Shown in pieces: positions 3,416-52,357 of a stretch of DNA of 64,000 bases; within the stretch, counting starts at the first letter, position 1, and each line of letters opens with the position of its first letter. A program made the translations under genes and the position numbers. This stretch comes from Klebsormidium nitens. Lineage: Eukaryota; Plantae; Klebsormidiophyceae. The notes below the pieces were generated by a model, which did not search any database, was not told where the DNA came from, and worked only from the letters and a program-made list of their open reading frames with translations. Where the stretch lies: positions 121,779 to 185,778 of the forward strand of contig DF237072.1 of assembly GCA_000708835.1 (NCBI GenBank). The letters run 5' to 3'.

Positions 3416-6400
3416 TTACATGTTCTTCGACGCAGCCCCGCGCCCCGTGGCGCGTATTGCGAGCTCCTTTAGAATCAGGCCGTAGCACGACCCGCTTTCT
3501 GTCGTCTTATCGTACTGCAGAAGTTCTTGCACCCGCGCCAGACCGTCCTGGAGAGTGCGCAACCTGCACGAAGGGAATGCAACTGGATCGGCCTACAAGA
3601 TACGTTGGGCTTTTCCGACCGGTACCAGACTCGTTGAGATATTCACGTCAAACTCGATCACGCTGCCAGTGTTCGAATTTTCGCGCGATGCAAAACAGGC
3701 AAGAATTCAGAAACAATAGGCCGTGCGCAGGCAAAAAAATTCGAGGGTCTGGCAAGGGCCACCTTCATGCAAGTGGTGGGTGGATCGACCCCGGTTTGAA
3801 AAGCGTCAGACCGGCTTTGGGTTTGCTGGCTTTGAAGGCGGGAAAAAAGTCTCCCAAGAAAGTTTGAAACAATCAAGACGGTAAAAGCCCCCGTGCGCTG
3901 CCGTTTCTCTCGGACTGGATCTAGAACCAGGAGTTTGCTTCCCTTGCTTTTGGCCCTACCTCGCGGGGTCGTCCAGGATCGCCCGGATGACGTCATTCAG
4001 GCGGCCCGTGATGTCATCCGTCTCCAGGTTGACCGTGAACGTGTCGTAGTCCAGCAGTCTGCTCCGCTCGAAGGGCCGGTCGAACGCGCGGAAGAAGCTC
4101 ACCGGAATGCACCCCATTGAGATGGCCTTCCAGAAACGGGCTGTGTCCTGCGGACAGTTAAAAGTAACCAGGACGGTCTTTAACTCAGGAATCATCAGCG
4201 GCAAGAATATAAAGCTCCGAAAGTGATTTTGAATCCAACCCAACAATCTTTCTGCTCCGCACCCTCGCCCACGTCTCTAAACCGTGAAAGTGACGCCATA
4301 AGGGATCCCAGGCTGGCGAGCTTGATTATCGTTAACTATCTTTTTTTAAGCAACCCGCATTGGCCGCATTAGCGGCATTCGCTCTCCATACGCACCGTCG
4401 AAGTATTACGTGGACCTCGGGTCTGCTGTGACAGGGAGAGGCGAGAAGCAGTCGGGTCCCAACTGATTTCTAAGGACAAACGGTTCCTTTCTCTTCGACC
4501 ATCTCTTCGCAAGTAACGACAACACAACACATCCCTCGGTCCCTGGTTCCAGAAGCGAGCTGCGTGCAATGTTCAGATGCCAAAGCGCAAGCTTCTTGGA
4601 CAGGCGCACGTGGCTAAGTGAAAGGAATCCGCGGACCGACACAAGCTAGTCGAAGAAAAGCTTGCACGCCCTCAGTGTTTGTCTATGCGAAGAGGCCAGT
4701 CATTGAGCGGCGAAGCCTCGCTACGTGTTTCCGAAAAAGAAAGCGCAGACACAAACGAATTTGGCTGCCAACCAGGCTGAGTACGAGTCCTGAGTCTCAG
4801 TCCTTTGGACAAGAGGTGGTTACCCTTGTTTTAACCTCGGCAAGGCTGGTACCCGCCCGAGTCCGTTTATGGGACAGCTAACCACGTTTTGACCGGCTCA
4901 TAACCATCCGTAATCAAGGGCCAAATCTTCGTGTGAGAAACATGATGCGGACGGCTCACCTGCGTGTCTCCGGGCGGTGTGACACAAACACAGCTAACCA
5001 CTTCTTGACCAGCTCATAACCGTCCATGGTTACTAAGGGCCAAAACTTCGTGTAAGAAACACGATGCGGACGGCTCACCTGCGTGTTTCCGGGCGGTGTG
5101 ACGCAAAACACTGCCCGGCTCATGTCGGCGAGCGTCTCCTCCGCTGTTCGCGCCGCAAAATCCGACCCCGGAAAGGGATCCCTCACCCACTGCTCGTGCA
5201 GTTCCTTTCGGATTTCGTGGCCGTACCGAGCACCGTGCTGGTCTCGGGCCGAGAATCGGTACAGCAGTGGGATGCTCCGGTTGCTTTCGAGCGGGCGGAC
5301 AATCTGCAGCAAAAGGACGGTTCCATGGGCCCCAAAAGTTCAAGCGCTCTGGAAACGGAAGAGACTGATGCCGAAACGAATAACCTGAAATCGGGCCAGC
5401 CTTTCACCCCCGAAAGGATGCCTTCTCTCCAACTAAGCAAATCCGCAGGGAGTCTTACGTACTAAATGTCAGGATGGCGGACGGGAGAGCTACTCAAATC
5501 TACACCAAGAGAGGAGCTCGTGAGAGTCGAAGCAGTTTACCGCGTGACGCTTCGGCTGAGTCGGAGATGAAGGGTTTTCTAGCGATGGGCTGGAATCTAA
5601 GCTGAAGAGCGGTTGTGCACTTGCATAACTACAGAGATTAGATACAATACAAGCTGGGTCTGCTCGGAAAGTTCGGACCAGCAGGGACTTCACCAAAAGA
5701 TAACGTTACGGGCGGCCTGGCCGACTCGGTTCCTGCCTTTGCCTCTGAGGCGTCGAAAGCCGATCCCCAGTTTAAGCAACAGCAGAAAACGCTGGTTGCT
5801 GGAGACACGCCGTCTCCCTAAACGATAAGCAGAGTCGAGACCACGATCCTTGAAGCTTCTGACTGAGAGCGTCCCGTGCTCTCGCAACGAATCTATCTTC
5901 CGTTAGGGACACCGCGAATGGATCAGACCGTCATTTCTGACATTTGTACCGTTTTCAGACGAGCCTTCTCTTAACAAGCGGGATTAATTTTCGGAAGATC
6001 GTAGTGATCTTACAGGTACAGCCTTTTCCGGACCAAGATGGTCTTGCCCACTAATTCTGCCTCTGGTTTAAACGCGACCCAGGAGGTGGTTTGTTAACCT
6101 ACCCGGTTCGGCTTTAACCACATGGGAACCACAACGTCCCGCCCGGGAGCGTGACAGAAGAAGTCGTCAGGGGCGCGGTCAGGATCGTATTGGTGTGCCC
6201 AAGAGCGGGCAACAAGATCGCCATTCGCCTGCACACGAGAAACAAGCCTGGTTTGTGCAGGGCGATTTGACTGAGTCTCGAATATATGCTATTTCGCCCC
6301 TATTTCCCTGCTTCCGTGTGCTTTGGGGAGAGTCACATGTGGCCGAAATCCTAGCAATTTCGCTACGAGAGGTCGGTAAAAGCATCGTAAGTTTGGAAGT

Positions 6401-7953
6401 TCGCTACAGTCACGAGGGAACTTCGGAAAGTAACAGGGGAAAGCAGACCCGAAACACTATGGAACTTCTATGAATGAGCCAGTTAGAATGTCTATTGGGC
6501 CCCCATTTAAAATATGAGAGTCCCCAGTACTGCTTTGACTGGAAGCATCATGCACTGCAGTGTCCAGGAAAACTAAGGATGCCGCTCTGCCAAAGAAAAA
6601 GAAAACGTTTCCTGTCGTCGTTTCAAACGTCCTATCCCCAAAGTCTGCTTCGCAAAGATCCTTTCATCTGTGGCCAGGAAAGGTCCCAGTTTGATTGGTT
6701 GCTGACAGATTGCGGATCGGACCTTTTGCGGAACCTTGCACTCAGGATCTCATGCCTTACGTACAGCCTCTCTGGAAGTCTTTGCTAGTAATCGATGTTA
6801 CTGCCCTCCTGACAAAATGCAGTGAGGTTTGGCCATCATCTGTGCGCTGCTTCCTAGATCTCCTTGGCCAACGATCATCGGGACGTCCGTAGGGGAGCAA
6901 GCTCGACAAAGAATTGCAACCCTGACTGACGTCCAGAGTCCACGGACTCTTGGGCACCACCAATGTGGCCCCAGTAAAACATTCCGGTTTAGGAGCGCCA
7001 GGGGAGTTTGTCTTTGCAGGCTTTCTACAATTTACCTGAACCAGCTCCAGATTGTTGCGCCTACGACCTCAGAATCCACAAACATTCGGGCCCCTTTGCA
7101 GGCATATCCAGCTCGAATGTTGAAAGTATCTAGCTAAAAACAACAGCTCAAATGATGAGATGATCTAGCTAAAAGCACCAGCTCAAATAATGAGAGTATC
7201 TAGCTAAATCCATCAGCCCAAGGTCTGGAGCCTCGAGCTCTCGCGCACCTGAATGCTGATAAGCTGCCCCACTTCCCTCCTTGCATCCTTCAGAAACCCA
7301 TATGCATCGCACCGCCCGTTGTCGTACCCAAACACGGCCACATGGTCCGCCCCGTTCGTCCGGTTCCAAAACGGCCAGCTCGTCCGAACATGGTCCAAAG
7401 CGTCCGACACAAAGCGCGAGGCGTGGGCCACTCCCTCTTTAAACGGCGCACCGTCCTCTTTTTCAAACGACCACTGCGTGTTGAGGTAGTAACCCAGGTA
7501 CATGGGTATGTAGAACAGGCTGGCGGCCTCGGGGTTAAGCGTCCTAACCCGGCTGGTTAACAGGAACCGGTGGAGGTGCACGTCGGTGTCGTATTGAGTG
7601 TCGTGGTATGCGGCCGTCCGGTTGAAGACGTGATCCGTGAAGCGCTTGGGCATGGCATAGACGTAAACAAACCCATCCGGGTAACCCGCGAGCTCGGGAG
7701 CATTTCCCGCACTCCCCTGTCTAGTTTCTAGCGCTACGCCAACGACGTCGCCGGCAGCTTTGGTTACGTCAGCAAAGGGTCTGCTGTCCTTCTGCCCGCA
7801 TAGTAGCCCCAAAGACCCATTCAATCCTGGCCGTGACACCGCTATGTGCAAGCAGTCCAGCAGTAAGACCGTAACCGGGACAAAGCAGTAGACTAAAAGG
7901 GGCACTTTGCAGCTCATGATCATCAACCCAGCTGAAACCCTGTGCGCTCGCAT
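3416..7953 (-). CDS. GT47 / exostosin-family glycosyltransferase, 5 exons, ~463 aa
   Basis: Exons 7953-7249, 6228-6103, 5303-5079, 4147-3960 and 3563-3416, all GT-AG with matching phases. N-terminal TM (LLVYCFVPVTVLLL) and exostosin motifs VYVY, RTLNPEAASLFYIP, FWNRTNGADH, DVVVP, FCVTPPG..RFWKAISMGCIPV. Confidence 0.9.
4874..5112 (-). repeat. ~116-bp tandem duplication spanning the GT47 exon-3 donor site
   Basis: Units start at 4874 and 4990. Both contain CAG|GTGAGC and the end of the exon. The intronic copy has a 1-nt deletion. Confidence 0.9.
7128..7210. repeat. Intronic minisatellite, ~36 bp x 2.5-3
   Basis: Recurring ATCTAGCTAAA...CAGCTCAAATRATGAG in GT47 intron 1. Confidence 0.8.
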
Positions 7954-8299
7954 CTGCTGCACGTCGTTTGCAGCACTCTTTGCTGTCAGCTGAGTAGTAG
8001 AGATCTAGCTTTTAGAAAGCAAGCTCCCAAGTCAAGGTGTCGGTGTCAGCAGCTGCTAGTCAATGAGCTGTCGGGGCGCACACCGCTGGGCTGTTTGAAT
8101 TCTACCGCTTGAGTGGGCAGTGCGCGCGGCAGCTTTGCAGCGGGCAGGCACTCTGTAGACACTCACATACAGAGAAGGACAGCGAGGGCTCTCCGAATAC
8201 GACATGCACTTCCAGCAGTGGTTGCGAGGAGTAGCGACGCATTAGCGGCCGGCGCCACAACATTTATCACAGTGCTCACTTGGTTCAGCAGCCAGCTAC

Positions 8300-11990: not shown

Positions 11991-14900
11991 ATGACCTACC
12001 CCCAACTTACGCGCCCGGAAAAGGTTTCCCGAGGCACGCACCGCTCGCTCGCCCGCGCCGCCCTTGCCGCCCTCGTGCTGATGTTGTCTTTAGTGGGGAC
12101 GGCGGCCCGGGGGATCCCCCTGTCCGCTGACGTCACACTTGCGCCCGCGCAAACAACAGAAGGGATCGAGGAGGCGGTCATCCGTGTTGCCCGTTCCGAC
12201 CCAGGCTGGACCCAGGAAGATGACGTTGCGGCTGACGTCATCGTGCCGTTCGTTGGTGTGAACGCCAACATGATGAACGACCGGAGGCGCACGGAGTGGC
12301 CGGTGCAGAGCTATGGGGCGGCGCTGCGGGTGGGTCACCACTAACCGAAGATGGTTATCGGCCAAACCCGGCAAGTTGTAAAGGAACTCCAATGAAAGTC
12401 AACGACTCAAAAGTGTCCAAAGGAGCGAGTTCCTTACCTGTGGAGAAAATCCAACTCCATATAGTAGTGGGAAAACGAGTCAGAAAAAGACCCGGCCGTA
12501 AAGACACGAACGTCCAAAAAGTGATGGCCGTTGGATAGCTGCTAGACCGTGCTCGACGGATTCACGACTGACAGATTTTGCAAGTCTTGAAGATGCTAGG
12601 TCGACAGCTCAAGTCCATGCATAGATTTTGGAAGATTCTGACGTGCAAAACGCCGTTTGGACTCAGTAACTTCTTTTCGTGAACGGTAGATTTAGCAACA
12701 GTTTCAGTCCTCCTTTGTCGCCTGAGAGACCGCTCGAGATCAGACCCTTGGAGAGCAGGGAAAGCCAGATCTCGACAATCGTTACGCTTTTCATTGTAAT
12801 CCAGATAACAACATTACCCCCCCCCCCCAATCTTTCAGGAGCTCGGAGCTGGCATCGTTCGCTACCCGGGGGGTGACATGGCGGACTCGTACATGTGGTC
12901 GGTACCCCCCTTCGCAAAATCCGATCCTAGGATGGCACGAGTCGGGCCTGAGGAAGTTCCGTGCTGGGGTAACCTTCGCTTCCTCTTTCCTGCTAAGTGT
13001 TTTTGTCCCTGCTAGATGTTTTCTGTCAGCAGCAAGCACTCTCCTCTTCGCTGGATTTTGTAGGACCGTTCTTTGTTTCAAGATCGCACTGAAAGTGGCT
13101 CAAGAGAGCGCTGCTCAACAGAGTGCTTCCAGAGCGCAAATGTTTTGTCCCATTGCACACACTCTTTTGAGGTGCGCCCCTTCGAGCATCAATGACTCGT
13201 TACTTTCGCTCAATCTGCGCAAATCGGAATACGTGAGGCGCGTCTCAAAACGATCGGGCTCCAATGAAGCATTTGCGCCCGCCTAATCTCTGCTCGGACT
13301 CCTCCTTACCCCGCTCTTTGAATCTCCAGATGACCCAACCGAAGGCAACATGTCATACACTTGGCTCGGCTGCGACCCGCGCCAAATCGACTTCCCCCTC
13401 GAGTTACACCCCCAAACCCTTGGTTTTGACGACTTCATGACGTCAGCAAGCCAGGCGGGTTCCGCTGTTAACCTGGTGGTTCCGCTGGACGGAGCGTCGG
13501 AGTTCAACGACGACGACCACGTTCGGACGCGGAGCGTCGGAGCGGCGGAGCTTTTGGAGACGTCGGTAGCATGGGTGAGTGGTTTGGATTAACTCAACTC
13601 CTACTCATCGGCTCAACTTTGATTATTGAAAAGCTTTTCGAACAGAAACGAAGTGGAAGCCCGCGAAGCACAGACGAAGTTGGATGAGGCAGTAACCCTC
13701 AAAAGTGGCTAAACGCGATCCTCCCTTCTGAACCCGAAAGAAGCTTCTCCAAGTCTGGGAACAGAACACAAGGCTCAACGCTGCACTTTTGCACGGCAGA
13801 TTCTCTCAGCGCTGCAGATTTGCGCTGCAAATTTGCTCAGGGCTCGAAACACTGTGCATTCCACTTTCGCCCATCAAACGAAAAGCTCAGTGGTATTTCG
13901 TGGTTCGGCCGTCTCTTTCAAGGCGTCGGTTTCGCACTTTCTGCTTTCCTTCGTGCTGACCGGTACGTACCGTCTCTGCCACCAGGTCACCTACTGCAAA
14001 GACAAATACAACGTCACCCTGTGGGAGGTTGGGAACCAGCCAAACGAGCGGCTTTCGAGCGGCGACTTCGCTCACTGGCTTTTCCGGTATAGTGTCGCCA
14101 TGAAGGCTGTTAACCCGGGCATCAAGATCGGGGTTTCGGGCGACGATCCGGAATGGCTGGACGACGTACTGAACCGAGTGGGCGCCCACGTCGACTGGAT
14201 CAGCGTCAGTGCGTCGCCCTTGAGAGGTGCGTTTGACTGTTTTAGCACAGGAACCTTTTGTCATTAACCAGGATTGGTTCAAGGGCCTCGAACCGGACAT
14301 TTTGAACGTTTTCCTGGTAGCTACATGGGGGAAACTTACCAAACCCCAAATCCAGCTTGGTTGGTGCTGACTCTCTTCCTGTGCAGCCCTGACTTTCGAT
14401 GATCAAGTGTGCACGTTTCGAGGAGTTTCAATCTCTTTATGTTTACGATAACGGGGACGGTAAAGGTGCTGCTTAAGGAATGCATGCGGTGAGGCGTAGG
14501 TTCGAATCTCGGGGGAAGTATACTGGATTCGAAGTACAGAAATCGGCTGGGAAAGGTTTGAAAGCAGATGGGGAAGAGGATTCAACTATCACGCATGAGC
14601 TGACCGACAAGCGATCAGAAGGCTTCGTAGATCCAAAGCTACAATCCCGAACAGAAGAAAACCCAAAAAACGCTTCAAATGCTGAGACTTTGCAGAGCAA
14701 GATCTTTCTAGGTAGGCCTCGCTGCTGGTATGAGTGTAGTACAGTCATGGCGATCTAGTTTGTAGTGCTCACTTGCAACGGCGCTGGGGACGATCCTAGT
14801 CCGTAGCCTCAGCCCATGAAAAACCCATCTCGAAAACCCCTGCCCACTCATTAAAGAGGTTCCGCAAGACCTTTTTTCTGCAGACTTCCTCAGCTATGCA

Positions 14901-17204
14901 GACTACCTCGCATCGTCGAACCAAGCGCCGCCGCCGTTCGAGGCACTACGTCAGGTCCTACGCAAACATTCGTAAGCCGTTCTAACTTTCAGGCCAAAAG
15001 GACCTTAGTCCGCCCTATAAATATGCCCTATAAATATGCCCTATAAATATGCCCCGTCCAATCTGCTATCTCAGACGGTGAAATTCGACTCTGGAAGCAT
15101 ACCCGCTTCGCTGGTCAATTGAGCAATCGCTTCATCCCAATGTCGCTTGCTGAAAACGCTGTTTGCTGGCTTAAATTCCAAGAAACGTGAAGTTGAGAGC
15201 GGAATGTATTCGGATGCCGTCTCTCGTTCGTCCGTTTGGCGCATATGTCGTGCGCAGAACATTTCTTACAAGCGGGATAAAGCCGTTGAGTCCTCCGTTT
15301 TGATCGAGCGGACTATTCAAAATGGAGTTTTGGGCTGGCAAGAGCCTCTACTCTTGAAATGTGGCACATAATCGCCTCTCACAGAGAAAAAACTAAGTCG
15401 CGCTCCGGAACCGATAGATACCGGACCGTTCAACGGGCGTGATTCCGGCTCAGTTTGAAACCGAAAAGCTTGCAAGTCGCACAAGTTCAAGGATAGACTT
15501 CCGGAGAAGTTTCACTAGAGCGACGTCATGCTCCAGCTCGCACAAGGCTAGCAAGGAGCGTACAGAAAGCATCCATCGCTCGCAGAACATCTCGAAATCT
15601 CTTCAAACCCTGCACCCTCAAATAAAATGTCGTCATATCTCTCCAGCGCCGACCGTGGCGTGCCGCTCTGGTTCGCTGTGACGTCACTCTCCGCGGCCGG
15701 AGACACGTGGGCGGACGCCGACCCCGTCCGGCGCGCGCTCGCGTTTTCGGACGAGCTCCTGCGCCACGCGGCCACGCCGGGCGTTCGATTCTTACAAGTA
15801 TGTACCTTGACCGTGAAGTACGGAGTTTTTTCTGTAATCAGTCACCGGTGCCTTACGTCTGACAGCTCATTGCTGAGGCCTTTCTAACAAGCCCGTTGCC
15901 ATCTCGGCTTCAGCCCCGCAACTCTCGCGCGCGTGAGCGCGACGTTAGGATCCTTTTGACCGTAGAGGTGAAGAGAGACTCTGCAGAATTCAATTTGACA
16001 CAATCTTTTCCCCTAAGAGGAAGGTTAATAATTAAGTAGCATTCCCTGAGTACCAAATAATCGGATCGTAACCCAAGAAATGCGCGCGCGCGCCCTTTCC
16101 TTGCAGTTCTCCATGACCAAATGGTTCAACGACAACGACCCGCTGAGCTCCGCCTTCGCGGCGACCAACGCGCTCACGCTGGTGGGCGAAGCGGTCGCCC
16201 TTGTTTCGAACGCGCTTTCCGCTTCCGGTGGGGTGAAGCTCCGCGCTACCACCTCCGTTCCGCTACTCAGCGCGTACTTCGCAATCGACCGGTGAGCTAT
16301 TACTCTGATTCTGCTGAAGTCAAGGGGATATTTTCCAGAGGGTTTGTAACGCACGACCTTAACGGGTGCATGATAAGAACATCGCAAGTCCAATTGAATT
16401 GCGAAGTAGCTGCCCATTTCAGTCGCACTTTCTGATCTGGAGCGACTGTAACGACTTTCATCGTTCTCGGCACGCACTTACCGTTTAGCTTGGTCTGGCG
16501 ATCATCAAAGGTACCAGATTTCTTCGTTCTTTCATGACCACTGGAAATGGTACCGCCGTACGATTCGACTTCGTGCCCTCTTTGGGGTCCACTGTCGCTC
16601 ACTGTACTTGCTTAGAAAGACCCAGTATTTCCTTTCTTTTGTTAAACCAAATAATTCTGCCGGATCTTGTTACGTCCCATCTATACGTTGCAAACAAATC
16701 TCTTTCTGTCGGTACAAAGCGTTTCCTTTCTCTCCGCAGCGTACGGGATCCGTCAATCTGAAGAGTACATTCTAGACGAGAACTACGACGAGAAGTGATA
16801 CACCTCTCCAATGTTTTTGTTTGTCCTTTCAACTCTAAACAGTCAGTCCATCGCATCATACGCTTTACCATCCCACTCAATCCGGTAATGTACCTTCCAG
16901 GACCAAAAAAGAAGCGTCCGTCGTTCTTGTCAACCACGGTGGGAGGACGCGTGTCAAGCTGCAGCTGAACGACATCTTTACAACCGCAGAAGGAGAGTTG
17001 CCGGGAAAATTTGGATGGGAGGCCTCGTCATTCGCACTGCGTCCCGCCAAAAGCGCAGACGGCGCCTTGGAAAGGTGGCAGAGACCGCTCGTACAGGGCC
17101 TCGATGTGGACGCCGCAATCGGAGCCGTACACGTGGAAGTCCCGGAGACGTCTTTGGTGTCCGTAAGGATCACGAAGACGATACGTGGCAGAGCTGATGA
17201 ATTG
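11991..17204 (+). CDS. Module 1: signal peptide + clan-A GH (GH51/GH39-like) TIM barrel + C-terminal beta-sandwich
   Basis: Hydrophobic AALAALVLMLSLVGTAA after basic residues. Motifs IVRYPGGDMADSYMW, LGFDDFM, VTLWEVGNQP, AMKAVNPGIKIG, DWISV and SVVLVN...VPETSLVSVRI. Confidence 0.8.
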
Positions 17205-20200
17205 GTGAGGGCTGACGCTTTTCTGAACTTGGTTGAACACCGCAAGCCTTGAGCCGGGGCTGAAGGGTTAAGTCTGGACAGGGATCAGTAGTGCTTCAAA
17301 GCAGTGGTTTGCGAAAGACAAGAAGTGTTCAGACGCTATAGAAGCTCGAAATCTTCCGTGCCTTTGTGATGGATGGAAAATCTCCACCGGTTTCAGCATG
17401 ATGAATGTGATGCATCAAGTCCTTGTCTTTCTTGTACAGAGACCGGAGAACGACACCCTCCAGCAGTTCAGAGCTTTGAATCTTTCCCGTGCTCCTGTTC
17501 GAAGCTGAAAAAATGGGAGATAATTCAGTTCAATAACACTAACGCAATCCTTGTCGGTTTCTACAGACCGGCAGAACAACCCCCTCCGTCGCGCCTCCTC
17601 GCGGCCGCTACCTTGTCCTCACCGACAACCTGGCGAGCCCATTCACACCGTACATCCTCCGCATCCAGGACCTGATGCGCTCGCTGACAGCACCGGGGCA
17701 CGAGGTGAGAAAACGCTATTTGGCAATACTGTTACTAACATGTGCCTTTTCACACCGTACATCTTCAGGGTCTGTTGCTCTTTCACTTACACGCCCCGTA
17801 AGTAGAGGGCCTCGATCCTGCTTGAGAGATTCCTCGACTTCGGAGGTTCTCTGCTTGAGGTCCCTTTAATACTTTCAAGTGGTGGGAGAAGTCGTTCTCT
17901 TGTTTCTGGCGCGTTACAATTTGAAGGGAAAGTGCATGTTTAGTAACAAAACCCAGAACTGAGGAACCAGGACACAGCAGAGAATCCTTGTTTGCGAAGG
18001 AGTAGAAGCGTCAGAGACTCGAGTTTCCGTCCTCAGGTTGTTCACTTCCTGGAAACAAGCGATGACGTCAAGTGCCCCGACGCGACACGTCAGCAGCATC
18101 TGGAAGAGACCGGGGCGCTGTGGATGTGCGGCGGCGCGCCGCGGCTCTTCCAGCTGCTGCAGCAGCGCGAGCACGCGCGCGCGGGCTTTGACGCCGTCAT
18201 CATGATGGTGAGCTTGTCCCCTGCTGGCGGCCCCATCAAAACGGAACACTCGAGAGAAAGCGGAACCGGAAACCATTCATAAGCCAAAGTAGTGATGGTT
18301 TATTCCATATGGCTCCATATAAACCAGGTTGTAGTGCCCACCGCAAGTTCAGCCCAGGTGACCAGGTTGCTGAAACGTCCGGATCCGCGACGTCGGGAAT
18401 ACGTTTTTGTTGGAGATTGACAGTACGTAAAATCCTGTCAACCTAAATGCAGATCGCACCCATTCCGGTGTCCACTAACGTGTCAATCTATAGCCAATTC
18501 GCAACTTTCTTTACTGCGCCGTAGCTTGGCCAGAGTGAATGATGACGTGTCTCTAACGACTGATCCACGTTTGAGTAGGGCAGGCACTGGCCATAACGGC
18601 CGCATTGTAAAATGCGCTTCAGCACTCACATTAATTTTGCCGGCATTTCATTCAGCGTTTGGGCGTCCGCTGTACCTTATGACTCAAATAAGTGGCTTCA
18701 CGAAGTGAGGCTTCACACTAAGTTCTCCTGCAATCAAACTAACCTAGATGCTATCCAATGTGCCTAACGTAAACCCAAAATCTTGAAGCAAAGAGAAAAG
18801 AGCCGAATCCGTCATGGCGGAAAGGGAAGGATGAAATGATAAAGCTATCGAGCCCCCAAAAGTACATGCACTGCAAACACAAAGAAAAATTCCTCCCATT
18901 CTTGTTTCACAGCCCTGGTATTGGTTCTCACCCAACCTCTTCGAGCGCCACGTGGACACCATCGCGCAAACCGCGCCCCAAACCGCGCTCGTCGTCCTGA
19001 CCGACGACGCGCACGGCGCACGCGCTGCGCGCCTCTCTGCCGACTTCCAAAAGTATCCCCACCTGCCCTTCTCCCCGGACCCCGACGTCGCGGCGCGCGA
19101 GGCGCGCACGTACGCGCGCGCAGACGTCGTGGTCACCGTCAGCGAGGAGGACGCGCAGCTGGTCTGCGCGCACGTGCGTACGCGCGCGCAGTGCTTTGCG
19201 TGGACGTGGAGCACCAACACGACGCGCGCGCGCGTACCCGCGGCCGCGGAGTTGCCAGGGTTTGGGGCGCGGCGCGGGATGGCGCTCATGGGCGACTTCC
19301 ACAACCCGACGACTGCGACCGCGCTTCAGGTGTGTGTTGCAAATGACGAAGCTTCAATTCTTCAAAAGCAGGCTTTTGCCGAGTAATCTGACCAGCCTCG
19401 GACGGGTGGGGTTAGTTTTGAGGTTTTGGGGTGGGTGCGGGTGCAAAGCAGGTGATTTGTGAACAGGGTCTAGAGCACATTTCTGTTGAAATGAAGAAAC
19501 AGGCTCATCCAGGCGACCAAGAAACCGAGGATGCGCTTCGTTGGTCGCTTAGAAAGCCTGTTGCTCAAAATGCGGAGACCCTGGCGGAACTTTCGCTGGC
19601 CGTTCACTTAAACACACGAGTTGCAGCTGCCACGTGTACGATCTGACGCTCCAGACTGAGTCTCAGGCTTGCTCTTACTGCAGTGGTTCATCTGGAACGT
19701 CCTTCCCGCGCTCCAAGAGCACTTCGACGCAAAGAACGAGCGCGTTCCGCTCACGCTTGTTGGCAGCGGATTCCGGTCGGCTGTCTTCACTCCGTTGCTG
19801 GCTCAGCTTGAACAGGTGAGCGGCAGCAGGTATTCAGACGTATGAGAATAAATTGGCACAGTGAGGATGTTTTCGACGTTCTTTTTGTTGAAAATGCAAC
19901 CCGAGGGAAATGATTTCACATTACCTTTTCGGCGTCAGCGGGTTGTCTGTTGGATCGTATGTATCACGTTGCGACTTAACTTTGTAATAGGGAGAAAATA
20001 ATGAAATTATATCATGGCCGCGCAGAATCTTTGTTGAAAGGGTGCGAGACAAGCCGCTCTTCGTTTGATTTCCTAGTTAAGAAGCCAAGCGAGGGTTGAA
20101 GCCTTCTCATACATAACGAAGACTGACCTCAACTCGATCAACTCTAGTCAAACCCCGTCTAGCGCATATCTAGAGTCGCCCTGAGATCACTAACTTTAGG

Positions 20201-23200
20201 TGACTTGGCCTTCACGAATCTGAAATTCGAAGCCGTAATTCCTTTACAGGCAATCAAGCTGAGCCGCGGCATCGGCCCCCTCGAACTCCAGATCTCTCCG
20301 GAGGGCCCGGAAGCCGTCGCGCTTCTCCAAACGCAGCGCGTAATGCTCGCGCCAGTTCAGGCCGGTACAGGTGTCAATACCAAAGCGTTTTTTGGGTTAA
20401 GCATCGGCCTCCCGGTCGTCTCAACCCGGGCTGCTCTCGGCGGGTATTTCCCGCGAAAAGCGACCGGGGATGGTGGGTGGGAGGTGGTGCCTGAAAGGGA
20501 GTTCTGCGGGAAGAGGATGACGCCGGATGACGTGTTCTTCGTGGGGGCGACGGCGGACGAGTATACGAGGTCACTGATTGAAGCCTACACAAACGAGACG
20601 GTGAGGAACTCAAGTGCACAAAACAGGCCTAGCTTACAGATGGACTAGAGATTTGTGAGAGTAAAAGAATCCTTATGCTGACGTCTCGCTTGTCAGACAG
20701 CTATCCAAAGATGACGTTTTGGTGGGCTCGATTGATTCCCACGAGTTTCTCATGAGAAGTTTCTGCAGATTCTCTCTCTGTCCTATGAGATCTTGAACTT
20801 CTGTCAAGCGCGTGACCAAGAAACATTACTTTAACGCAGTATTGCTTCCGACCTTCTGTAGAGAGAAAGTATTTTGTTCGTAAACTTAGCGGCGTTGAAA
20901 GATCTGAGTGGCCCATGCCAAATCAGTCTAGAAAGTTGACATCTGTTCCAAAATTCTCACGCGAAGTTACTTTGAGTCCCTCTCTTTTCGCACATGCTTA
21001 CCTTGTTGATACGCGCGCTTGATCCAGATGTGCACATCCGATAGTATCTGAGAACACCTCTTCGCAATCTGACCAGCAACCGGTTTTATGCTGAGTTCAC
21101 TTAATTCGAGATGGTCTGAGGCAGACTTGGCAGCTTCGCTGACTTTTGTTTCCGCAACACCTCCACTTCCATGGATGAGACCATCGATCCTTTCCATTCC
21201 TCTCCTCAGGCCTGGACGGATCGTCTGGAAGCATCCCTTGAAGTCGCTTCCTGCCTTATGAACGCCGACGCCCAAGCATCAATCGCGCAGAGACTCACAG
21301 CCGCAGTCGCAAGCGCGCGCGCGAACCTCCAAACTGTAAACCCTACGGGCAACCAGCCGCGCCGAGCGATGCTCCAAAAAGCGCCTGAGATCAAACCCCT
21401 ATCCACCAAAGTTCCGCCGTCCGGTGCTTTAGAATGCAGAAACGGGATGAGAACGCCACGTGGCAGGCTCTCGGATTTCAGCCCGCCAGGCTGGTTCATC
21501 TGGCCGGCCGCGGCCGCGGCGTTCCTGCTGCGCGTCGCCTTGTTCGTCGCCCTAAACCCCGCTGAAACCCTGCAAAGAATCCCGTCTCCTCGAAAGCGGC
21601 TTGAGCCGTCCGCGAGCGCGCGCTCGCATCTTCTGATGGGCGCAAAGAAGCTTTGGTTGGGAATCCTGTTCAAGAACCGGTGGGGCAGTTTCAAGGGCGG
21701 TTTTTCCGTACGGACCTTTCTTCTCGTGGGGCTTATTTACACCGGGTTGGCTTTGATCTTTGCCGGCGGCGCGCACCTTACTTCCTCCCCGGTCGTTAAC
21801 CCGTTTTCCGGCGCCGTTAACCCCTTTTCTGGGCCCGTTGACTACTTCAACCCGAGGGTCGCGGCCGCGAAGGCCGACGCGCTCGCGCACTTGGTCGCGC
21901 CGCCCGTCGATGTGGACTGCTCCTGCGACGGGTTCGATTATTTCCTGGTGATCGGCGTTGCGTCCGCCGCGCACGCGGCCGCCGAGCGCCAGAACGCGCG
22001 CGACACGTGGGCGCGCTTCGGCGAGCTCGTGCCGCGGTGCCCAGTCATGGTGCGCTTCATCGTGGGGCGACACAAGAACGGCACCGTCATGGAGATGGTC
22101 GCCCGCGAAATGGAGGAGTACGGAGATATCGTTCAGGTACGTTCAGAAAGGCACGTCTGTGGGTTCTCTATCTGATCCTTCCACGGAGATTCGTGGATTT
22201 TGAGGGGCTTTCGTCAACTGCTCAGATTTCTTATTTGATCTGCTGTTGTTGAGGAAGTTTCTCGTGCCGGTAGCTCGCGAGCTTTTTGGAAACCGTGACT
22301 GATCGACGTCGTACAAATCACCCCGCAGCTAATCCCTGCATCCCATTCGTGTACCACGTCGAAACACCTTGACTTAGAATGATTTGCCAAAGAGCTCTTC
22401 AGCCAATCCCAAATCTCAGCGGAGGTGGTTAAATCTTGGCTCGTTTTGACATCTTGCTTCCCAGCTATGTGAGTCGTTTCGACATCTAGCTTCCCAGCTA
22501 TTTGAGTCGATTAGAAGAGTGTCGTCTCGCAACGAACAAACGAAGTAGAGTTACTTGCGTAAAAGTGCTGACTCGGACGCATAAGCCGGTCTGCAACTCC
22601 AATTGACAAGCTGCACGGGATTAGCCGCAATCGATAACAAACAGGAAACGCAGAGCAAATGTGTTTCCAAGAACCCGGCCCAAATGATTGTGTCATGTCT
22701 ACAGGATCTGGCCATCGAAGAGAGTTACGATGCGCTCAGCCGAAAGACGGCGGCCTTCCACCGCTGGGCCGCGGAGAACGTCAGCTTCAAGTTCGCATTT
22801 AAGACGGATGACGACATCTTTGTACGCGTGGACCGCCTCGTTTCGGCGCTCTACCAGGCAAGTCTCCGTCAAGGCTTCCACGTTGAGGTGTTTCGTGGTT
22901 CAATGGAATCTGCAGAAACTACATGTGGGCTTACGATCCAAATTTCGAGCCGGAAGGCTTTTTCTGTGGGGTTATACGGTCTTGTTTCCGCAATTCAAAA
23001 GTCTCGCCCAGAATTTTCGCGCGAAACGATTGAGCGAACGTTAGCCACCGCTGCAAAGATGCTATGAAAGTAGCGTCGTCTTGTAAGCGTCGAAAGCCTG
23101 GGGTCACGTGGGTCGCACCGCATAGAGCCATTCTGATATCTGACGCTCAACTGGTCATGAGGCTTCACGAGTGAAACCACGGCTGTTTGCTTTCCGGAAG

Positions 23201-25448
23201 AATCTGGCCCAACCACTGCTTTGGATCAAGTTTTGCGCTGCTTGAGACTTAGAGCAAGCAATATGCGCACTGTTAACGCGCTGCAAACTGCTTCTCCACA
23301 GGTACGAGATCTGCCGCGCGTTTACTGGGGGAACCTGGGCTTCATGAAGATGCCCATCAAGGAACGGTCGGGCGAGTGGGCAAAATGGTACGTGCCAAGG
23401 ATTTTCCAAGGGGCAGAAATTCTATATCACAAATATGCCGGTCCGCCCTTCTCTTCTCTGGGCATATATATATGATGTGGGACCTCATGCATATGCATAG
23501 ATAGAACGCTTGGATCTGCTGTGGGCCTCTGTTGCCTTCTTTCAATCCCGAAGGAAGTCACATCATCAGCTCGGGTGCTTCGATCCTTCTCCCTTCCCAG
23601 AACACCGATCAGACAGCGGTTCAACTATTAACTCCCCAGTCTATCCGTCATCCGACTACTCGAGGAAAGTAATCAAAGAGTTCCTTCAGCAGAATGCCAT
23701 GTTCCAGCAGGAACGTCAGGTTGATTGCCAGATTCAACGCGCTTTCGCAGGGAATTCTTGTCGCTAACCAGGCTTTTACCAGACCCGTTATCCAGGCTTT
23801 GGACAATTAACCAGGCCGCAACCTTGGTTCCAGGCTGGTTACCGCCCCAGTCTGGTTGTTGGAAAAGTGACCGAACTCTAACCAGCCCATAAGCAGCCAT
23901 AGTTCGGGGCCAAAAACTCTTATGTTTGCAAATTTCTGGTCACAGGTACAGCGACTTTTGGCCGGCCGGCGTGCCCTACCCGCTCTTCGGCCGCGGCCAC
24001 GGGTTCGCGCTCTCGCACGATCTGGTGCGCGCGCTCGCGCGCTGGGAGAACAAGCTGGACTGCGCGGGGCTAGAGGACGTGTGCACGGGTGTCCACCTCT
24101 CAAGCGACCACGTGTACGAAGCCACGGGGCGCCAGGTAAGGAGTCCGCGCGCGTGCGGCAGTGGGACTGGATGCCTCGAACTGACCGGAGCCGAATCTTC
24201 TGAAGCTCAGCGTTTCTCAGTTTGAGACAAGGAGCCGTCGTGAGGCCTGACTTTTTAATGGATGTTAAAGCTTTACACCCTGGTACTTCGTCTCGTCGTG
24301 CCGATATTCCTTTCGCTTGTCGTCCTTCGGTAAGAACGCTTCGCTTTTCCGAACACAAAGTAAGAACTCGTGGCCGGAACAGTCTGTTCTCTCGACGCCT
24401 GAGCCAGCCGTCGGACAGGCCGCACCGATCGGACCCATCCTGACCCAAATAGCTTCATTTTTCCGTTCCAACTTTGTGCCGTTTTTCTGATTTGGTCTGA
24501 CAACTGGCAACGGCTCATGTTTACCGAAGTAGTTGCGAAGACGTGGCTCCCCATCGTTGAGGTATGCTCCATGGAGACGCAATATTAAGCGGTCATGAGG
24601 GCCAGGCCCCCTTTCCACAAAGTCTTCACAAGGGCAGAATCATGGTTCACCTAGTTGAAATGGACGAGGTTTCCGGACAATATTCTAACGACGCGGAGCC
24701 TGGCTCAATATTGGCCGGGGGCTGGTTTGAAAGCACCTGTATCTATACCCACGTTGTCCGTTCTCCAAGGACTAGCGTAGTGCACCTGGCGGCGGGAGAT
24801 AAAGGTGCCAAATCTCAGGCTAATGTAAAAGATGAAACTTCGCTGCAATCCGCAACTTGAGCTGATGTGAAAACCCGACCTGCAGCAAGTAAACTCTTCC
24901 CCTCAACGTGGTGCAGCTGACGGAGACCGGGCTGCCCATCTTCGAAGATATTCTCACCGACTGAAACACGGTGACTCTACCAAGTTCAGGGCGATGTGAA
25001 AAGCCGATCCAACTAAAACCTGCCCTGGTATTTTCACCAGGGTCTGAACGTGGTGCACCTGATGGAGACCGGGCTGCCCATTTTTGAGGATATTCTCACC
25101 GACTATGACGACACCCAGTGCGAGGAAGGCATGACGCTCGCGCTGCATCTGAAACGCCCCATCGAAACGATGCGGACGTTTGTACGCACGTACGAGACCT
25201 GCGGACGCATGTGCGGCTGCGGCCGCGGCGCCAAAGGCGTCCGCAACGCGACCGTGATCGCGTCAGGATTTAAGCTCACGCAGATGCGCGCGGCCGCGGC
25301 CGCGGCCGCGTGGCCGTACTTCGACCTCCAAAACCAGGAGACGGAGATGTATCACGACAAGTATGAGTGCTTATTCACACAGGCGGATTACCACAGTGCG
25401 GCGGAGCGGGCTTTGTGCCGCGCGAAGGCGGGCAGGAAATCGTTGTGA
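11991..25448 (+). CDS. Predicted 18-exon multidomain glyco-enzyme (~1,551 aa): SP, GH clan-A-like, GT4-like, TM-TM, GT31
   Basis: Exons 11991-12329, 12839-12968, 13330-13574, 13986-14226, 14884-14971, 15647-15797, 16107-16291, 16901-17204, 17567-17704, 18037-18207, 18913-19329, 19684-19815, 20250-20600, 21210-22136, 22705-22857, 23302-23387, 23946-24135 and 25041-25448. Sum 4,656 nt, every junction phase-compatible, no internal stop. 16 GT-AG introns and 1 GC-AG. Confidence 0.72.
15012..15054 (+). repeat. (GCCCTATAAATAT)x3, three perfect TATA-box-containing units in an intron
   Basis: Perfect 13-bp units at 15012, 15025 and 15038. Confidence 0.9.
17567..21335 (+). CDS. Module 2: GT-B fold, GT4-like glycosyltransferase domain
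   Basis: RYLVLTD..RIQDLMRSLTAPGHEVV, YARADVVVTVSEED, GFGARRGMALMGDFHNP, WFIWNVLP..LTLVGS, MLAPVQAGTGVNTK..SIGLPVVST and YTNETAW. Confidence 0.8.
21694..25448 (+). CDS. Module 3: GT31 (beta-1,3-galactosyltransferase-like) domain with TM and stem
   Basis: TM TFLLVGLIYTGLALIFA, then LVIGVAS..ERQNARDTW, VRFIVG, EMEEYGDIV, ESYDALSRKT, FKTDDDIFV, YWG, YPLFGRGHGFALSHDLV and EDVCTG. Confidence 0.9.
22448..22510. repeat. 33-bp tandem duplication in an intron
   Basis: GACATCTWGCTTCCCAGCTATKTGAGTCG at 22448 and 22481. Confidence 0.85.
24625..25110 (+). repeat. Degenerate ~135-bp tandem echoes of the last-exon acceptor of the multidomain gene
   Basis: Copies of AACGTGGTGCACCTGATGGAG at about 24639, 24774, 24905 and the real exon at 25047. 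The 24905 copy matches about 55 nt of exon. Confidence 0.75.
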
Positions 25449-28400
25449 AAATCTTCACGTATGTGGGGAGAAAGGGGAGGAGACGCGTCTCCCCCTTTTC
25501 TCCTCCGCCTTTCTGCGAGCTTTTCCCCCCAAGGGGGAGACAACTAATCCTCCTTGTGTGCACGTGGGGTTGATGCAAGGTGATTGAAACTGAGGATCTG
25601 GTCTAGTTTTGGTCAATTATAGGTCAGAAAGATAGGTATTAGTACAGCCTGCAACTGCAACTGTTGCCACGTGTAAACGAATACTGTAAGCGCCCGCCAA
25701 GCTAGAGTCTTACGTCGTCAATTACTGAGTTGAGTTGCTTTGGAGAGGTATTTCTAACGCCGCAAAAACATTTTTAAATCTTTCCGCCTGTCGCCCGCCT
25801 GTAGTCGACCGTAGCAGGAGCGATCCGTAGACACGCGACGTCTGCAAGCTTGGGCGATTGTCTTAACTACGTTAAAGCTAGCTTTAGAATAATTGATTAA
25901 GCTTGCTGCTATACTTTGTAACGGAACCGTACGTGTTGGATCTTATTTTGAGTTACATGAATGTCTTTCCCGTGGACGTCCAGAACCTAAGAAACCAGTT
26001 CAGCTTGTAGAGAAGCCAAGTGCCAGGAAATGAAGTGGGCAACAATGACGTGTTTCAATTCTATTCTTGCAACCAGTTGCATGAAAGTTTCAACCAGGCC
26101 GTGCTGCAGAGCAATGCTTACCCAATCAAAGTCCCCTGAGGCCTTCATAAGACCACATGTCAATGCACAACTGTTGTGACCACTTCACTTGAGACGCCCC
26201 AAATAACGGCCAACTTTCACGAGCAAGGGTCGATTCACATTTTTCATTATGCGCATAGGTTTTGTTACCAACGCCTCGTCAAAGCGTGAATCTCGAATCT
26301 TCCCCGTCTAATTTGATCACCCTTCAAATCAAGCTCTGGCTTTGGACGTCCAAATAGAGCTGCGAATCAGCCCTTCGCGTTCTTGTTGATCGAGTTTAAT
26401 GCATGAGTCATTTTCGAAGTGACCGTTATAGAAGACTCTCGTTAGATTTATTTCCCATTTATTTCGTCTGTGATCCGCCGCCGGAACCTCATTCAAGCCC
26501 CCATTCAAGCAATGGCATCTGCAACATTTCGGCCGGCCGCGCCGGTTCGATTACCACGTCTTTGGACACACGCTTCATAAATCATCATATTGCAGGGAGC
26601 CTGCACTGCTCCAGTTCTATGCGGGCCAGTTTGCTCAGTTTCTTGACTCAGTCCCGCGGGCCGACGTTTTGAAACAAGGTGGCGGCCGGGCGCGGCCGGC
26701 TGCCCGGCCGCCTCAGTGCCCGAGGTGAACCTCGCGCCCGGCGGCCGCGGCTTCGGTTGAAACTGGGCAATAGTGGTGGTTAGTAAGAACCATGTTCTGT
26801 GAACCAAACCCTGTAGTTTTGCAGTGGCCCGGCCAGCTCTTGCATAAAACTTTGAAAGTGGGGACTGGGCCAGCATTTGCGCTGAGCGCATTTGCAAGTT
26901 GCAGCATTCCAGTTTCTCTAGAGCTCTTTGTGTTTAACGCAACTCCTCAAGTGCATCACATGATGCATATGTACTGGACTATGCTGCACAGACAATCAGA
27001 ACCGTGCTGGATTGAGGACGAGCAGTTTTTTGCGGCACGGTCTGCCAGCAGTGAGAAGCTGGTGAGTATTCACGCGCCCGTGACGAGAGTACAACGAGAG
27101 GAAGCTCCAGAAAAGAAGTATAGATTGATTTGCTGAAAGGTGATGCTCTTAATTCTTTGAATGCCAGGATTCTGCTATATTTGATATCAAAAGCTTTCAA
27201 AGTTCGAGAATCCTGGTTACATTTCGATTGATTTCCAGCCTTTCTTTGCCCTCAAACAATGCTTGCGTTGCGAATATCACTGAGGAGGTGTTGATCGATC
27301 ATCATGAGTTGAGGGCAGTGCATGTATCAGCTACCGGGCATGACAAAAAGCCCGATGGTTTGTGCCTTTTGAGTCTAGGGCTTCTTTTCAGCTAGCTCGG
27401 CAGCTTTATTGTTTTTGCACAGGTGTCTGTTCAAGCTCCATAAGAATGAACCTTCTGCAACCCCACAAGTTGATCGAGTATAAGTCTGAGGGGCTGCTCA
27501 GTGACTGTGATGATCTTTGCCAAGACAACAGTGACGTTGATTGTGCTCGAAAAGATGATTCCTGTCTACTTGATAGCTCCGTATTGCTGTGTGGTCAAAG
27601 GTTTTCTTGTTGCTTGTATTCCCAGCATTGGAGCTAGTGGTGCACATTTGAAGCTGCCGCTTCTGAACAGTTGCTGCTTGAGGTCAATCTGGCCAGCGGT
27701 CAGTGATGAGACTGGGACCAGGTAGGAACTTGCTTGTCGTTGATCTGGTAGTTGGTTTCACAGCAGCCGCACACAATCCTGATTTTGGAGTCTGTTTGAA
27801 ACTTTGGAATTTGTGGTCCGCAGGCTTGGACAGAATGAGTTGACCAATGATATTGGCAGAGAGTTGAGTGCCAGGAAATTCAGCTGGACTCTGTGTTAGT
27901 ATGCTGATCGCCCTTTCCTCCCTCTCCTCTCTAGCAAGGAGAAGAGTATGGTGTGCATCAGACAAAGGTGCATCGTACCTGGAACGTTGTTCTTGCATGC
28001 TGGAGCTTGGCAGACAAAAGCGAGTTTGGGTTCTCCTTTCAGAAACCGTTGCAATCTCCATCGGAGGCAACACGTGTGTCTTCTGAAAACTACGAGCGCA
28101 TGCAAGGCTTCTCATTCATTGGACTTCTTTTATCGTCTCTTAAGAGGCAGCTGCTTTCGCAAGGGGGTTGGGGAGTTGAATGTCTACCACCATCAGCATA
28201 GTATGGCACCACAGGCGTAATGGCACTGACTTAGGACTTTCTGTGCAGGAGGTAATGTATGCCCCAACGAACCATCATAGACAGCCGGATAGCCTCCTTC
28301 CAGACCAATTTCGGACCTTCCAGATCAACTCTTCTGAGCTCGTCCGGTTCAGAGCTACTTCAAGACCTACTATAACCCTTCAAGAAGTAGAGGTAGCAGC

Positions 28401-29655
28401 CCGTGTTCTTTCGACGAGCTCAATTTCTTCTTAGCTCGTGCGTTTCCGCTTGATACCTGCTCGAATGGTTTTCGGTCTGAAATGAATCTATCACCCTAGG
28501 TTCTATGTTCTTTCTATCCCTGCTCGGTGTTTCTTTGTGTCGAGGATGTTTTGGGTGGATGTGTCTGGCTGTGAAACATAAATCATTTTGTTACCATGTA
28601 TTCAATCTTGGACTTGATTTTCAACAGGGCTTTGCTCGTTGAATGGGCAAAGAGAAGTGTTTTCAATCCTTGCCGGTTACTTTCAGAGGCACGAGCCCTT
28701 TCTCGGACGCAACCTCAGCGATTTTATGCAGTTTTTTTTGGTCAGTGCTGACGGCCCCAGTACTTCTTATTGCGCGCCTTGGTCTCCAGCAGCTATATTC
28801 AAAAAAAGCTAGTCAAATCTTGAGTGTATTTACAGTTGTGAAAGGTCGGCATCCTTGGTTGCCTTCAAAATGTTGATGACCCGCATAGCACACATAGGCA
28901 CGAGATGCGGATGAAGTATCTTCTGATTCCGGTTAGAATACCTTGAACTATCGACAATTATTCTGCAACTGATCCTACTCGGAGCCAGCTTGGCGCTTTC
29001 TCCTGCAGGAATAAACCGTCTCGAACCGTGTACTTCCAGATCATAGTCGCTTCCAAGCCACCAGATTCGAAGATTGCTTCTTTCTGCAGGAATCCTTTCG
29101 TCCAAGTCAAGAGCCCCTGCTGTTGTAAGAGCCGGGATCGCACGGGATCTGGGACTCTGCATCGCCATGATAGTGGCGCTGCCACGGATGGGCGCCATGC
29201 AGAAAGTAAGACCACCTGTTTCAAAGTTAGCACTTTGCGAAGCTTTAGAGGTTTGGAGAATTCAAGCGGCCCACTCCACTTCAGTCAGGTTCTGTTGCAG
29301 CCGGGGGGGGTCCTTTGTGCGTATGGTATTTGTGAATCCACAACGCAGGCCCTACAAGGGGGCACTTTCGTTCACGGGGTGTTGCGTTGTTCCCTTAAGA
29401 TAGTCCAGATTACAAGTGGCATAAATCGACCAAATGCGCTCATTCATTCCCAGTCGGCGTGCCTCGATGCATGCGCGGTCAAATGCTGCCACCAGAAGTT
29501 GCAGACGCAAAGATACCGCATCTCTTCTCCTTTGCCATTTTGGCAGAAACGGAGACCAGCCCCGCCATCGCAACCGTCGACCGCCTTTCTTGAGAACTAC
29601 AGATGGCTGCTGACGCCATGAGGGGTTATATTCGAGCCAAGGGCTCCAGGATAAG

Positions 29656-29978
29656 GTGCGTCTTTCTGGTTGACCGTCATCTATTTGGGCCCTGTGCTTT
29701 GTGGAAGATGCCAGGGATTGGGGCATCAAATGACCCTGACGAGTAAGGGTCTCGGCTTTTTGGAAAAAGCTGTGAGCAGAACCTTAAAGATCTTTTCTTA
29801 TGAGGATATCAAGTCGTGCGTCTTTCTGGTTTGACCGTCATCTATTTGGGCCCTGTCCTTTGTGGAACATGCCAGGGATAGGGGCATCAACGGACCTTGA
29901 CGAGTAAGGTTCTCTGCATTCTTGGAAGAAGCTGTGAGCAGAACCTTCCAAGATCTTTTCTTATGAGAATATCAAGTC
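29656..29978. repeat. 160-bp tandem duplication
   Basis: Units start with GTGCGTCTTTCTGG at 29656 and 29816 and are highly similar throughout. Confidence 0.9.
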
Positions 29979-50290: not shown

Positions 50291-50397
50291 AAGGAAAGTC
50301 ACCGAGTGCAGCTACCTAGAACGTGCGCTCAGCAGAGGCTAGTACTAGACGAGGCCTGTATTGTTTGTTCATTTCTTCAAGGAAAGCGCCAGCCACT

Positions 50398-52280: not shown

Positions 52281-52357
52281 TAGTGTGCACTTTGGACAGG
52301 TTGAATTATTTTCTACTTGTACCCAGCTTGTTCACTACCTTAAGGAAAGCGCAAGCC

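Follow-up and report, generated by a model that had tools for sequence, protein, structure and literature searches.

A GH51-like domain without its catalytic glutamates forms the N-terminal module of a predicted glycosyltransferase fusion protein in Klebsormidium nitens

Introduction

What use does an alga have for a glycosidase fold from which the catalytic residues appear to have gone? The question is raised by a locus of Klebsormidium nitens that lies within a 64,000-nucleotide stretch of contig DF237072.1 (assembly GCA_000708835.1, positions 121,779 to 185,778 of the forward strand), the whole of which we refer to here as the window. An original prediction, made from the letters of the window, had placed at 12839–17204 a domain of glycoside hydrolase (GH) clan GH-A that appeared to lack both catalytic glutamates, and had proposed that it is a glycan-binding pseudoenzyme. 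Here we report that this domain is GH51-like, that alignment places glutamine and serine at its two catalytic positions, that selection has maintained it in related taxa, and that it is joined in frame to a domain resembling GT-B glycosyltransferases (GTs) and, probably, onward to a GT31 domain. With moderate confidence, we take the GH51-like domain to be a lumenal, non-hydrolytic module of a membrane-anchored protein that would hold a glycan for the transferases fused to it.

Results

Glutamine and serine at the catalytic positions of a GH51-like domain

By reading GT–AG splice sites and their phases, and by comparison with related contigs, we placed the GH51-like domain in eight GT–AG exons that span positions 11991–17204 on the + strand, with the ATG at 11991:

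11991..12329, + strand: exon 1, start codon, signal anchor and first strand region (VGVNANMMND)
12839..12968, + strand: exon 2, RYPGGDMADSYMWSVPPF block, containing the conserved Arg of RYPGG
13330..13574, + strand: exon 3, FDDFM block and strand 3 region (profile positions 124–178)
13986..14226, + strand: exon 4, strands 4–6, with WEVGNQP and the terminal DWISVSAS (14193–14216)
14884..14971, + strand: exon 5, loop and helix linking strands 6 and 7 (FLSYADYL...LRKH)
15647..15797, + strand: exon 6, strand 7 (LWFAVTSLS), with the terminal FLQ over AQL of GH51 strand 8
16107..16291, + strand: exon 7, strand 8 (FSMTKWFND over the family WNTRW) and start of the beta-sandwich (profile positions 349–388)
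16901..17204, + strand: exon 8, beta-sandwich at the C terminus; its donor at 17205 is in phase 0

We aligned the exon pieces one by one to a profile made from an alignment of 22 bacterial relatives (A1), and the pieces were collinear with this profile over positions 35–485. The strongest match was that of exon 4 (E value 2e-26), followed by exon 2 (E 4e-17), exon 3 (E 3e-5) and exons 6 and 7 (both about 1e-3); exon 1 matched positions 35–59 weakly. The profile in turn matched solved GH51 arabinofuranosidases over about 420 residues that take in both the barrel and the beta-sandwich (E 5e-31). In this match the family GNE fell on that of the Thermotoga enzyme and the family xTE on its DEW nucleophile motif, the glutamates of which we take to be Glu172 and Glu281, respectively. 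Exon 4 alone matched the Thermotoga GH51 structure 3s2c (E 1e-3), with GNQ over GNE, and exon 2 aligned to the RYPGGN of GH51 structures 2c7f and 2y2w. Downstream of the anchor the domain comprises about 486 residues, compared with the 440–480 residues of the bacterial domain, and its motifs follow in the same order. The algal module thus appears, from its sequence, to be a complete GH51-like clan GH-A domain consisting of a (beta/alpha)8 barrel and a beta-sandwich.

The bacterial GH51-like family comprises at least 397 bacterial species from many phyla. Its consensus reads LRYPGGEKSD.YLWS, LDFDEFM, YWEIGNE and MKAVDP.IKIG, followed by the later blocks IDFL.V(H/S).YP, V.VTE.N and WNTRW. Some members are labelled alpha-L-arabinofuranosidase by IMG, and the family includes no characterised member. 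An exhaustive search with exon 4 returned short genomic open reading frame (ORF) fragments of close relatives and about 38 bacterial proteins, and nothing else; four matches from a representative search (P0005, P0018, P0022 and P0026) did not fit the family profile and were set aside as false matches. The family lies outside the curated models: PF06964 (Alpha-L-AF_C) matched no exon and no bacterial relative, and searches of Pfam and NCBIfam with single exons of the GH51-like domain gave no match. When bacterial relatives and exons were compared with Pfam, only sub-threshold matches to Glyco_hydro_79n were obtained, and the NCBIfam ArfA model scored 18–37 bits against a cut-off of 625.

The acid/base position of the algal domain is occupied by Gln (CAG, 14037–14039, within WEVGNQP of exon 4), which aligns to the invariant Glu of the family; the strand-4 acid/base Glu found in active retaining clan GH-A hydrolases is absent from the window and from four related taxa. 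The nucleophile position is occupied by Ser (TCA, 15684–15686, within LWFAVTSLS of exon 6). In particular, alignment of the exon 6 orthologues with hhalign paired the serine of FAVTS with the invariant Glu272 of P0007, followed by a three-residue deletion; the ungapped register of strand 7 puts Ala at this position instead, and neither register provides a carboxylate. In the beta-6 motif VSASP, Ser is found at both the His position (14208–14210) and the Tyr position (14214–14216). Because the His position already holds Ser in the nearest bacterial subgroup, only the loss of the Tyr is informative; this strand-6 Tyr, which positions the nucleophile, is Ser in the window and in L087, L005 and L006.

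The bacterial members (about 38 of about 38) keep both the acid/base Glu and the nucleophile Glu, and their beta-6 Tyr is nearly invariant; the combination of Gln, Ser and Ser at the catalytic positions occurs in the algal sequences only. Among the mappable invariant columns of the family, some 20 are kept in the alga, the main changes being at E163, Y224 and E272 (P0007 numbering). Conserved residues of the pocket are retained as well: the Arg of RYPGG and the Asn of GNQ, together with the Gln of FLQ and the Trp of TKW.

We found no hidden nucleophile exon between exons 4 and 6: in the relatives compared, exon 5 is the sole conserved coding block in this interval, and, since the intron that separates exons 5 and 6 is 176 bases long in L087, an unrecognised exon supplying the nucleophile is ruled out. 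Exon 5 restores the reading frame between its neighbours, is kept in L001/L003, L005, L006, L087 and L004 with an identical GTAAG donor, and gives a spacing between strands 6 and 7 equal to that of the bacterial proteins. A donor for this exon at 14954 was rejected because it leaves exon 6 out of phase; a related contig led instead to the donor at 14972, with which the frame is closed.

Much of what had been read from the window at the outset is borne out by these comparisons. The five motifs that had been singled out (WEVGNQP, FAVTSLS, DWISVSAS, RYPGGDMADSYMWSVPP and FDDFM) are all in frame on the + strand, with RYPGGDMADSYMWSVPP falling in exon 2, and the proposed loss of both glutamates agrees with the profile alignment, in which the beta-6 Tyr is replaced as well. 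The claim that the beta-6 His/Tyr is missing holds for the Tyr, now Ser; the absence of the His is shared with the nearest bacterial subgroup. The fold had been taken to be intact, as the collinearity of its roughly 486 residues with the bacterial domain also indicates, and the suspected likeness to bacterial GH51-like proteins was confirmed, with the nearest relatives being bacterial and not canonical plant GH51. Two of the tests that had been suggested, alignment to GH51 structures and a search for an overlooked exon carrying the nucleophile, gave GNQ over GNE (with the family xTE on the DEW motif) and exon 5 alone. The extent of the domain also needs revision: 12839–17204 equals exons 2–8, and the domain begins upstream of this, in exon 1.

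A separate observation concerns the DNA that encodes strand 7. The palindrome TGACGTCA at 15679–15686 covers the Val-Thr-Ser codons (gTG ACG TCA), including that of the Ser at the nucleophile position. It is conserved in place in L001 (2682), L005 (11239) and L087 (about 2890), and it is found elsewhere in the same gene at 12128, 12233 and 13438.

Purifying selection on the GH51-like domain

The relatives comprised contigs from Logan (L001–L003, L004 and L087) and from JGI (L005 and L006), of which L001–L003 and L006 represent one taxon; the closest is L087, with about 85% amino-acid identity. Exon order is conserved across them, and splice phases are equal wherever they were read. The acid/base Gln is present in L004, L005, L006 and L087, and the Ser at the nucleophile position in L001, L005, L006 and L087. 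Indeed, all three substitutions are identical in every related contig that covers them, and LWFAVTSLS is unchanged in the window, L001, L005, L006 and L087 (four taxa). Three taxa have CAG as the codon for this Gln and two have CAA, a synonymous variation indicating that the amino acid has been held while the codon drifted.

Identity to the relatives varies along the domain. Over exon 1, 107 residues are 73% identical in L087 and the final 34 residues are 68–74% identical in L005 and L006. The value is 86–91% for exon 2, 68–88% for exon 3 (in L004, L005, L006 and L087), 61–82% for exon 7 and 49–80% for exon 8, the GTGAG donor of which is kept in L005 and L087. With counts summed exon by exon, the ratio of nonsynonymous to synonymous substitution rates (dN/dS) over the GH exons was 0.23–0.27 at a dS of about 1; it fell to 0.07–0.15 in exons 2 and 4, which encode the former active site, compared with about 0.45 in exon 8, which encodes beta-sandwich. 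These findings demonstrate that the GH51-like domain is maintained under purifying selection, with intact frames, in five related taxa.

In-frame fusion to a GT-B-like domain and probably to a GT31 domain

Downstream of exon 8 the coding blocks continue on the same strand:

17567..17704, + strand: exon 9, opening of the GT-B-like domain (RYLVLTD...LTAPGHE); its phase-0 acceptor is shared by the window, L005 and L087
18037..18207, + strand: exon 10, further part of the N-terminal half of GT-B, completing GHE/VV; 79–96% identity in relatives
18910..20600, + strand: further GT-B-like exons, with conserved blocks at 18910–19332, 19678–19839 and 20232–20600
21210..24222, + strand: linker containing two hydrophobic helices, followed by GT31 exons; the block opens at a phase-0 acceptor (first exon from 21210)

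Joined together, exons 9 and 10 read ...LTAPGHE/VVHF..., a typical start of a GT-B transferase, and exon 9 has no in-frame Met upstream of it. In L087, exon 8, a 171-base intron and exon 9 share one open frame (ORF 4105–4770) with no in-frame stop, and it is on this ground that we place the GH51-like barrel and the GT-B-like domain in one polypeptide. For the blocks between 18910 and 20600 only the last donor, at 20601, was placed, and the remaining boundaries given above are the limits of conserved blocks. That donor is in phase 0 (20600/GTGAGG), and the pattern G/GTG(A/C)G is kept in the window, L005 and L006, as is the acceptor CAG/GCCTGG at 21210.

The GT-B-like exons gave weak Pfam matches to Glyco_transf_4 (E 0.077) and Glyco_trans_1_4 (E 0.051), and we found no relatives of these exons in the PDB. 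By visual reading, the C-terminal half of this domain (20313–20600) has NTKAFFGLSIGLPVV where GT4 enzymes usually have E-x7-E, so that two Glu are missing; this middle domain, too, may be atypical or lack catalytic activity. The GT31 assignment is that of Pfam Galactosyl_T, which matched three exons (E 3.5e-8, 2.2e-5 and 9e-3), with the DDD motif located in the block 22585–23064.

Hydropathy revealed a run of hydrophobic residues at about 18–44 of exon 1, preceded by basic residues, which we read as the signal anchor, and two linker helices with a basic loop between them. An N-terminal anchor combined with such a two-helix hairpin would leave all three domains facing the lumen. On the sequence evidence the GH51-like domain is joined in frame to the GT-B-like domain, and the conserved splice sites indicate that the latter is probably linked onward to the GT31 domain. 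The data thus support, on comparative grounds only, a single three-module protein. The domain is therefore no free-standing protein; it is the N-terminal module of a fusion with a GT-B-like domain and probably a GT31 domain, a context that the original prediction had not recognised.

Proposed bacterial ancestry in a eukaryotic nuclear setting

Outside the small algal clade every detectable relative is bacterial, and the simplest reading of the sequences is that the gene came from bacteria and gained its seven introns later. The summed exon scores singled out no donor phylum, being similar for Nitrospirota, Chloroflexota, Patescibacteria and Planctomycetota. The window itself is intron-rich eukaryotic nuclear DNA of about 51% G+C, a context to which both the seven introns and an adjacent plant-type GT47 gene attest. 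In particular, 7216–7962 on the − strand is an exon of an exostosin/GT47 gene that neighbours the three-module gene; its named relatives are land-plant IRX10-like proteins, with 31–35% identity, and unnamed relatives reach 70–75%. The likeness to land-plant proteins confirms a green-lineage setting for the window. The two genes may constitute a small glycan-synthesis gene cluster.

Other features of the window lie apart from this locus. Four paralogous ORFs on the + strand (1305–2321, 50323–51255, 52130–53270 and 56097–56738) share an N-terminal F-box-like motif, LQELP..(I/V)L..I..KLA.QD; ORF 1305–2321 had no relative at E 1e-10 in a collection of 5.8 billion proteins. Along the roughly 20 kb of the region 26000–46000 the AT skew stays negative (−0.10 to −0.155), and between 42 and 46 kb the GC skew is strongly negative.

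Discussion

A module that may hold a growing glycan

The protein would be a membrane-anchored, multi-exon product of a green-lineage alga, with the GH51-like module N-terminal and facing the lumen. Having neither carboxylate, the module would be unable to perform retaining hydrolysis; its sugar pocket would nevertheless still bind a glycan, because the pocket Arg, Asn, Gln and Trp have been kept. Because of the transferase fusion, the likely role shifts from that of a free lectin to that of an accessory module of a glycan-building enzyme, and we suggest that the module holds or presents an acceptor or product glycan to the GT-B-like and GT31 domains within the Golgi or secretory lumen. The pseudoenzyme half of the original prediction is thus supported by the loss of the catalytic residues together with purifying selection, whereas its glycan-binding half is something that we continue to infer. 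That the ligand is an arabinofuranose-containing glycan, as the GH51 likeness and the GT31 partner might suggest by analogy, is only a guess.

Several points weigh against this proposal. The three-dimensional placement of the algal catalytic positions rests on sequence alignment. The domain is not canonical GH51, and its ligand cannot be named from the family; the assignment of the middle domain to GT-B/GT4 is weak, with E-x7-E not evident. In L004, the most distant of the relatives, positions 679–681 read TAG at the Trp codon of WEVGNQ within an otherwise conserved exon, which may reflect an error of assembly, a particular allele or decay in that lineage. The spliced protein of the gene is absent from the protein collections, which hold only genomic ORF fragments of its relatives (P0001-3, P0043-44 and P0047-48). 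No transcript evidence for the gene was found, as no run recorded as RNA contains the stretch, and the only public run with any of it (X1) has two contigs, at a depth of about 3, that cover 14100–14565 and pass unspliced from exon 4 into intron 4.

Two of these points call for comment. The X1 contigs are uninformative on the splicing or expression of the gene; they differ from the window by one A>G at 14177, and their source is either DNA or unspliced RNA. As to the protein collections searched, the window's own proteins were not found in them.

We next consider what else might account for a conserved barrel without its carboxylates. It could be a sugar-free scaffold or oligomerisation module, a dead barrel kept to fold, space or multimerise the transferase domains. 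Purifying selection and fusion fit a scaffold equally well, which is a further point against the holding of a glycan; GH51 enzymes form hexamers, and three pocket residues now have small side chains. However, selection is strongest in the exons of the former active site (dN/dS 0.07–0.15) and weakest in the beta-sandwich (0.45), and the pocket Arg, Asn, Gln and Trp have been retained, which is not the pattern that a scaffold would favour. We therefore regard a pure scaffold as possible and rather unlikely.

Residual or non-canonical catalysis seems to us improbable. The barrel would in this case act as a transglycosylase, as a glycosynthase-like transferase with an activated donor, or in a myrosinase-like, assisted hydrolysis that depends on substrate or cofactor. 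The adjoining transferase domains and the retained pocket residues are compatible with such activity, and Ser at the nucleophile position is a change used in engineered glycosynthases. We know of no natural example, however, and the alga has lost both the acid/base residue, which is the general base in a glycosynthase, and the Tyr that positions the nucleophile. Moreover, in one GH51 enzyme the replacement of E by Q at the acid/base was enough by itself to reduce activity by a factor of more than 100 (PMC9964162).

A bolder version is that the Ser/Gln barrel is the natural counterpart of an engineered glycosynthase or thioglycosynthase, a hydrolase fold turned transferase that would add a residue to the glycan built by the fused domains. 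Its activated donor would have the opposite anomeric configuration; with a GH51-like pocket this could be a beta-L-arabinofuranosyl compound, for instance uridine diphosphate-L-arabinofuranose (UDP-L-Araf). We consider this a long shot.

There is also a slim chance that the catalytic positions have been misaligned and that other carboxylates substitute for them in three dimensions, making the domain an active hydrolase. The strand-7 alignment does need a three-residue gap, and it comes from a short exon piece with a low hhalign probability. Strand 4, however, is unambiguous, with GNQ over GNE, and both registers of strand 7 are non-acidic (Ser or Ala). Reading of the ortholog alignments disclosed no algal-specific conserved acidic residue near the motifs; the Glu at +3 after the Gln is not conserved, and the DDP motif is shared with the active Thermotoga GH51. 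Finally, that the gene is a decaying pseudogene or unexpressed relic, as the lack of transcript evidence and the in-frame TAG in L004 might suggest, is highly improbable given intact frames and canonical splice sites and phases in five taxa at a dS of about 1 and a dN/dS of about 0.25.

If the module does hold a growing glycan, as we favour, the protein would amount to a single-chain "assembly line" with which a green-lineage alga makes a glycan of its cell wall or of its glycoproteins, and a gene with only bacterial close relatives would have switched from breaking glycans to helping to build them. The locus also points to a large bacterial family of GH51-like proteins, the substrate of which would name the algal ligand.

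Comparison with known systems

The closest counterparts are the bacterial members of the GH51-like family. A representative from a Fimbriimonadaceae metagenome-assembled genome (MCU0316926.1) illustrates the equality in length and in motif order, which in bacteria and alga alike runs RYPGG, FDxFM, WE(I/V)GN, MKAV.P.IKIG, D(F/W)(L/I).VS, TRW/TKW and beta-sandwich; over algal exons 2 and 4 the family shows 34–58% identity. Unlike the alga, the bacterial members keep GNE, xTE and the Tyr, and have neither introns nor a transferase fusion. Canonical GH51 enzymes (Thermotoga 3S2C/3UG3 and Geobacillus AbfA 1PZ3) share the clan GH-A barrel and the C-terminal beta-sandwich, and their strand-4 GN(E), DDP.W loop and RYPGG can be aligned to the algal domain. 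The relationship is nonetheless distant, and both of the catalytic Glu are missing from the algal domain.

Dead glycosidase folds that serve as binding or scaffold modules are already known, and for a GH51-like case, or one fused to several transferases, we found no description; the literature likewise yielded none of this gene or of its domain architecture. Non-catalytic GH folds include the GH18 chitinase-like lectins, the GH13-like 4F2hc/rBAT and the GH1-like alpha-klotho. As in the alga, a glycosidase fold has been maintained by selection after the loss of its carboxylates and reused for binding or scaffolding. However, these proteins belong to other families, and none of them is a GH51-like domain within a glycosyltransferase polypeptide. 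In the GH1 enzyme myrosinase, the acid/base Glu is replaced by Gln, the nucleophile is kept, and the enzyme is active with ascorbate. The algal domain shares this Gln and differs in that myrosinase has retained both its nucleophile and its activity.

Within GH51 itself, the clade II enzymes of Poales and other monocots read G-N-Q and have been proposed to be inactive (PMC9964162). They thus show that, in the plant lineage, the acid/base of GH51 has changed naturally from Glu to Gln. They are, however, canonical plant GH51 proteins that are free-standing and keep the nucleophile Glu, whereas the algal domain has also lost the nucleophile and the Tyr, is of bacterial type and is fused to transferases.

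The architecture as a whole recalls the fungal alpha-1,3-glucan synthase Ags1/AgsB, in which an N-terminal GH domain on the outer side and a GT-B synthase are joined by membrane helices (PMC5753165). The GH13 domain of Ags1 is regarded as a working transglycosylase, whereas the synthase domain lies in the cytosol (PMC5753165). In the algal protein, by contrast, the GH-like domain is without catalytic residues, and each of the domains is predicted to be lumenal.

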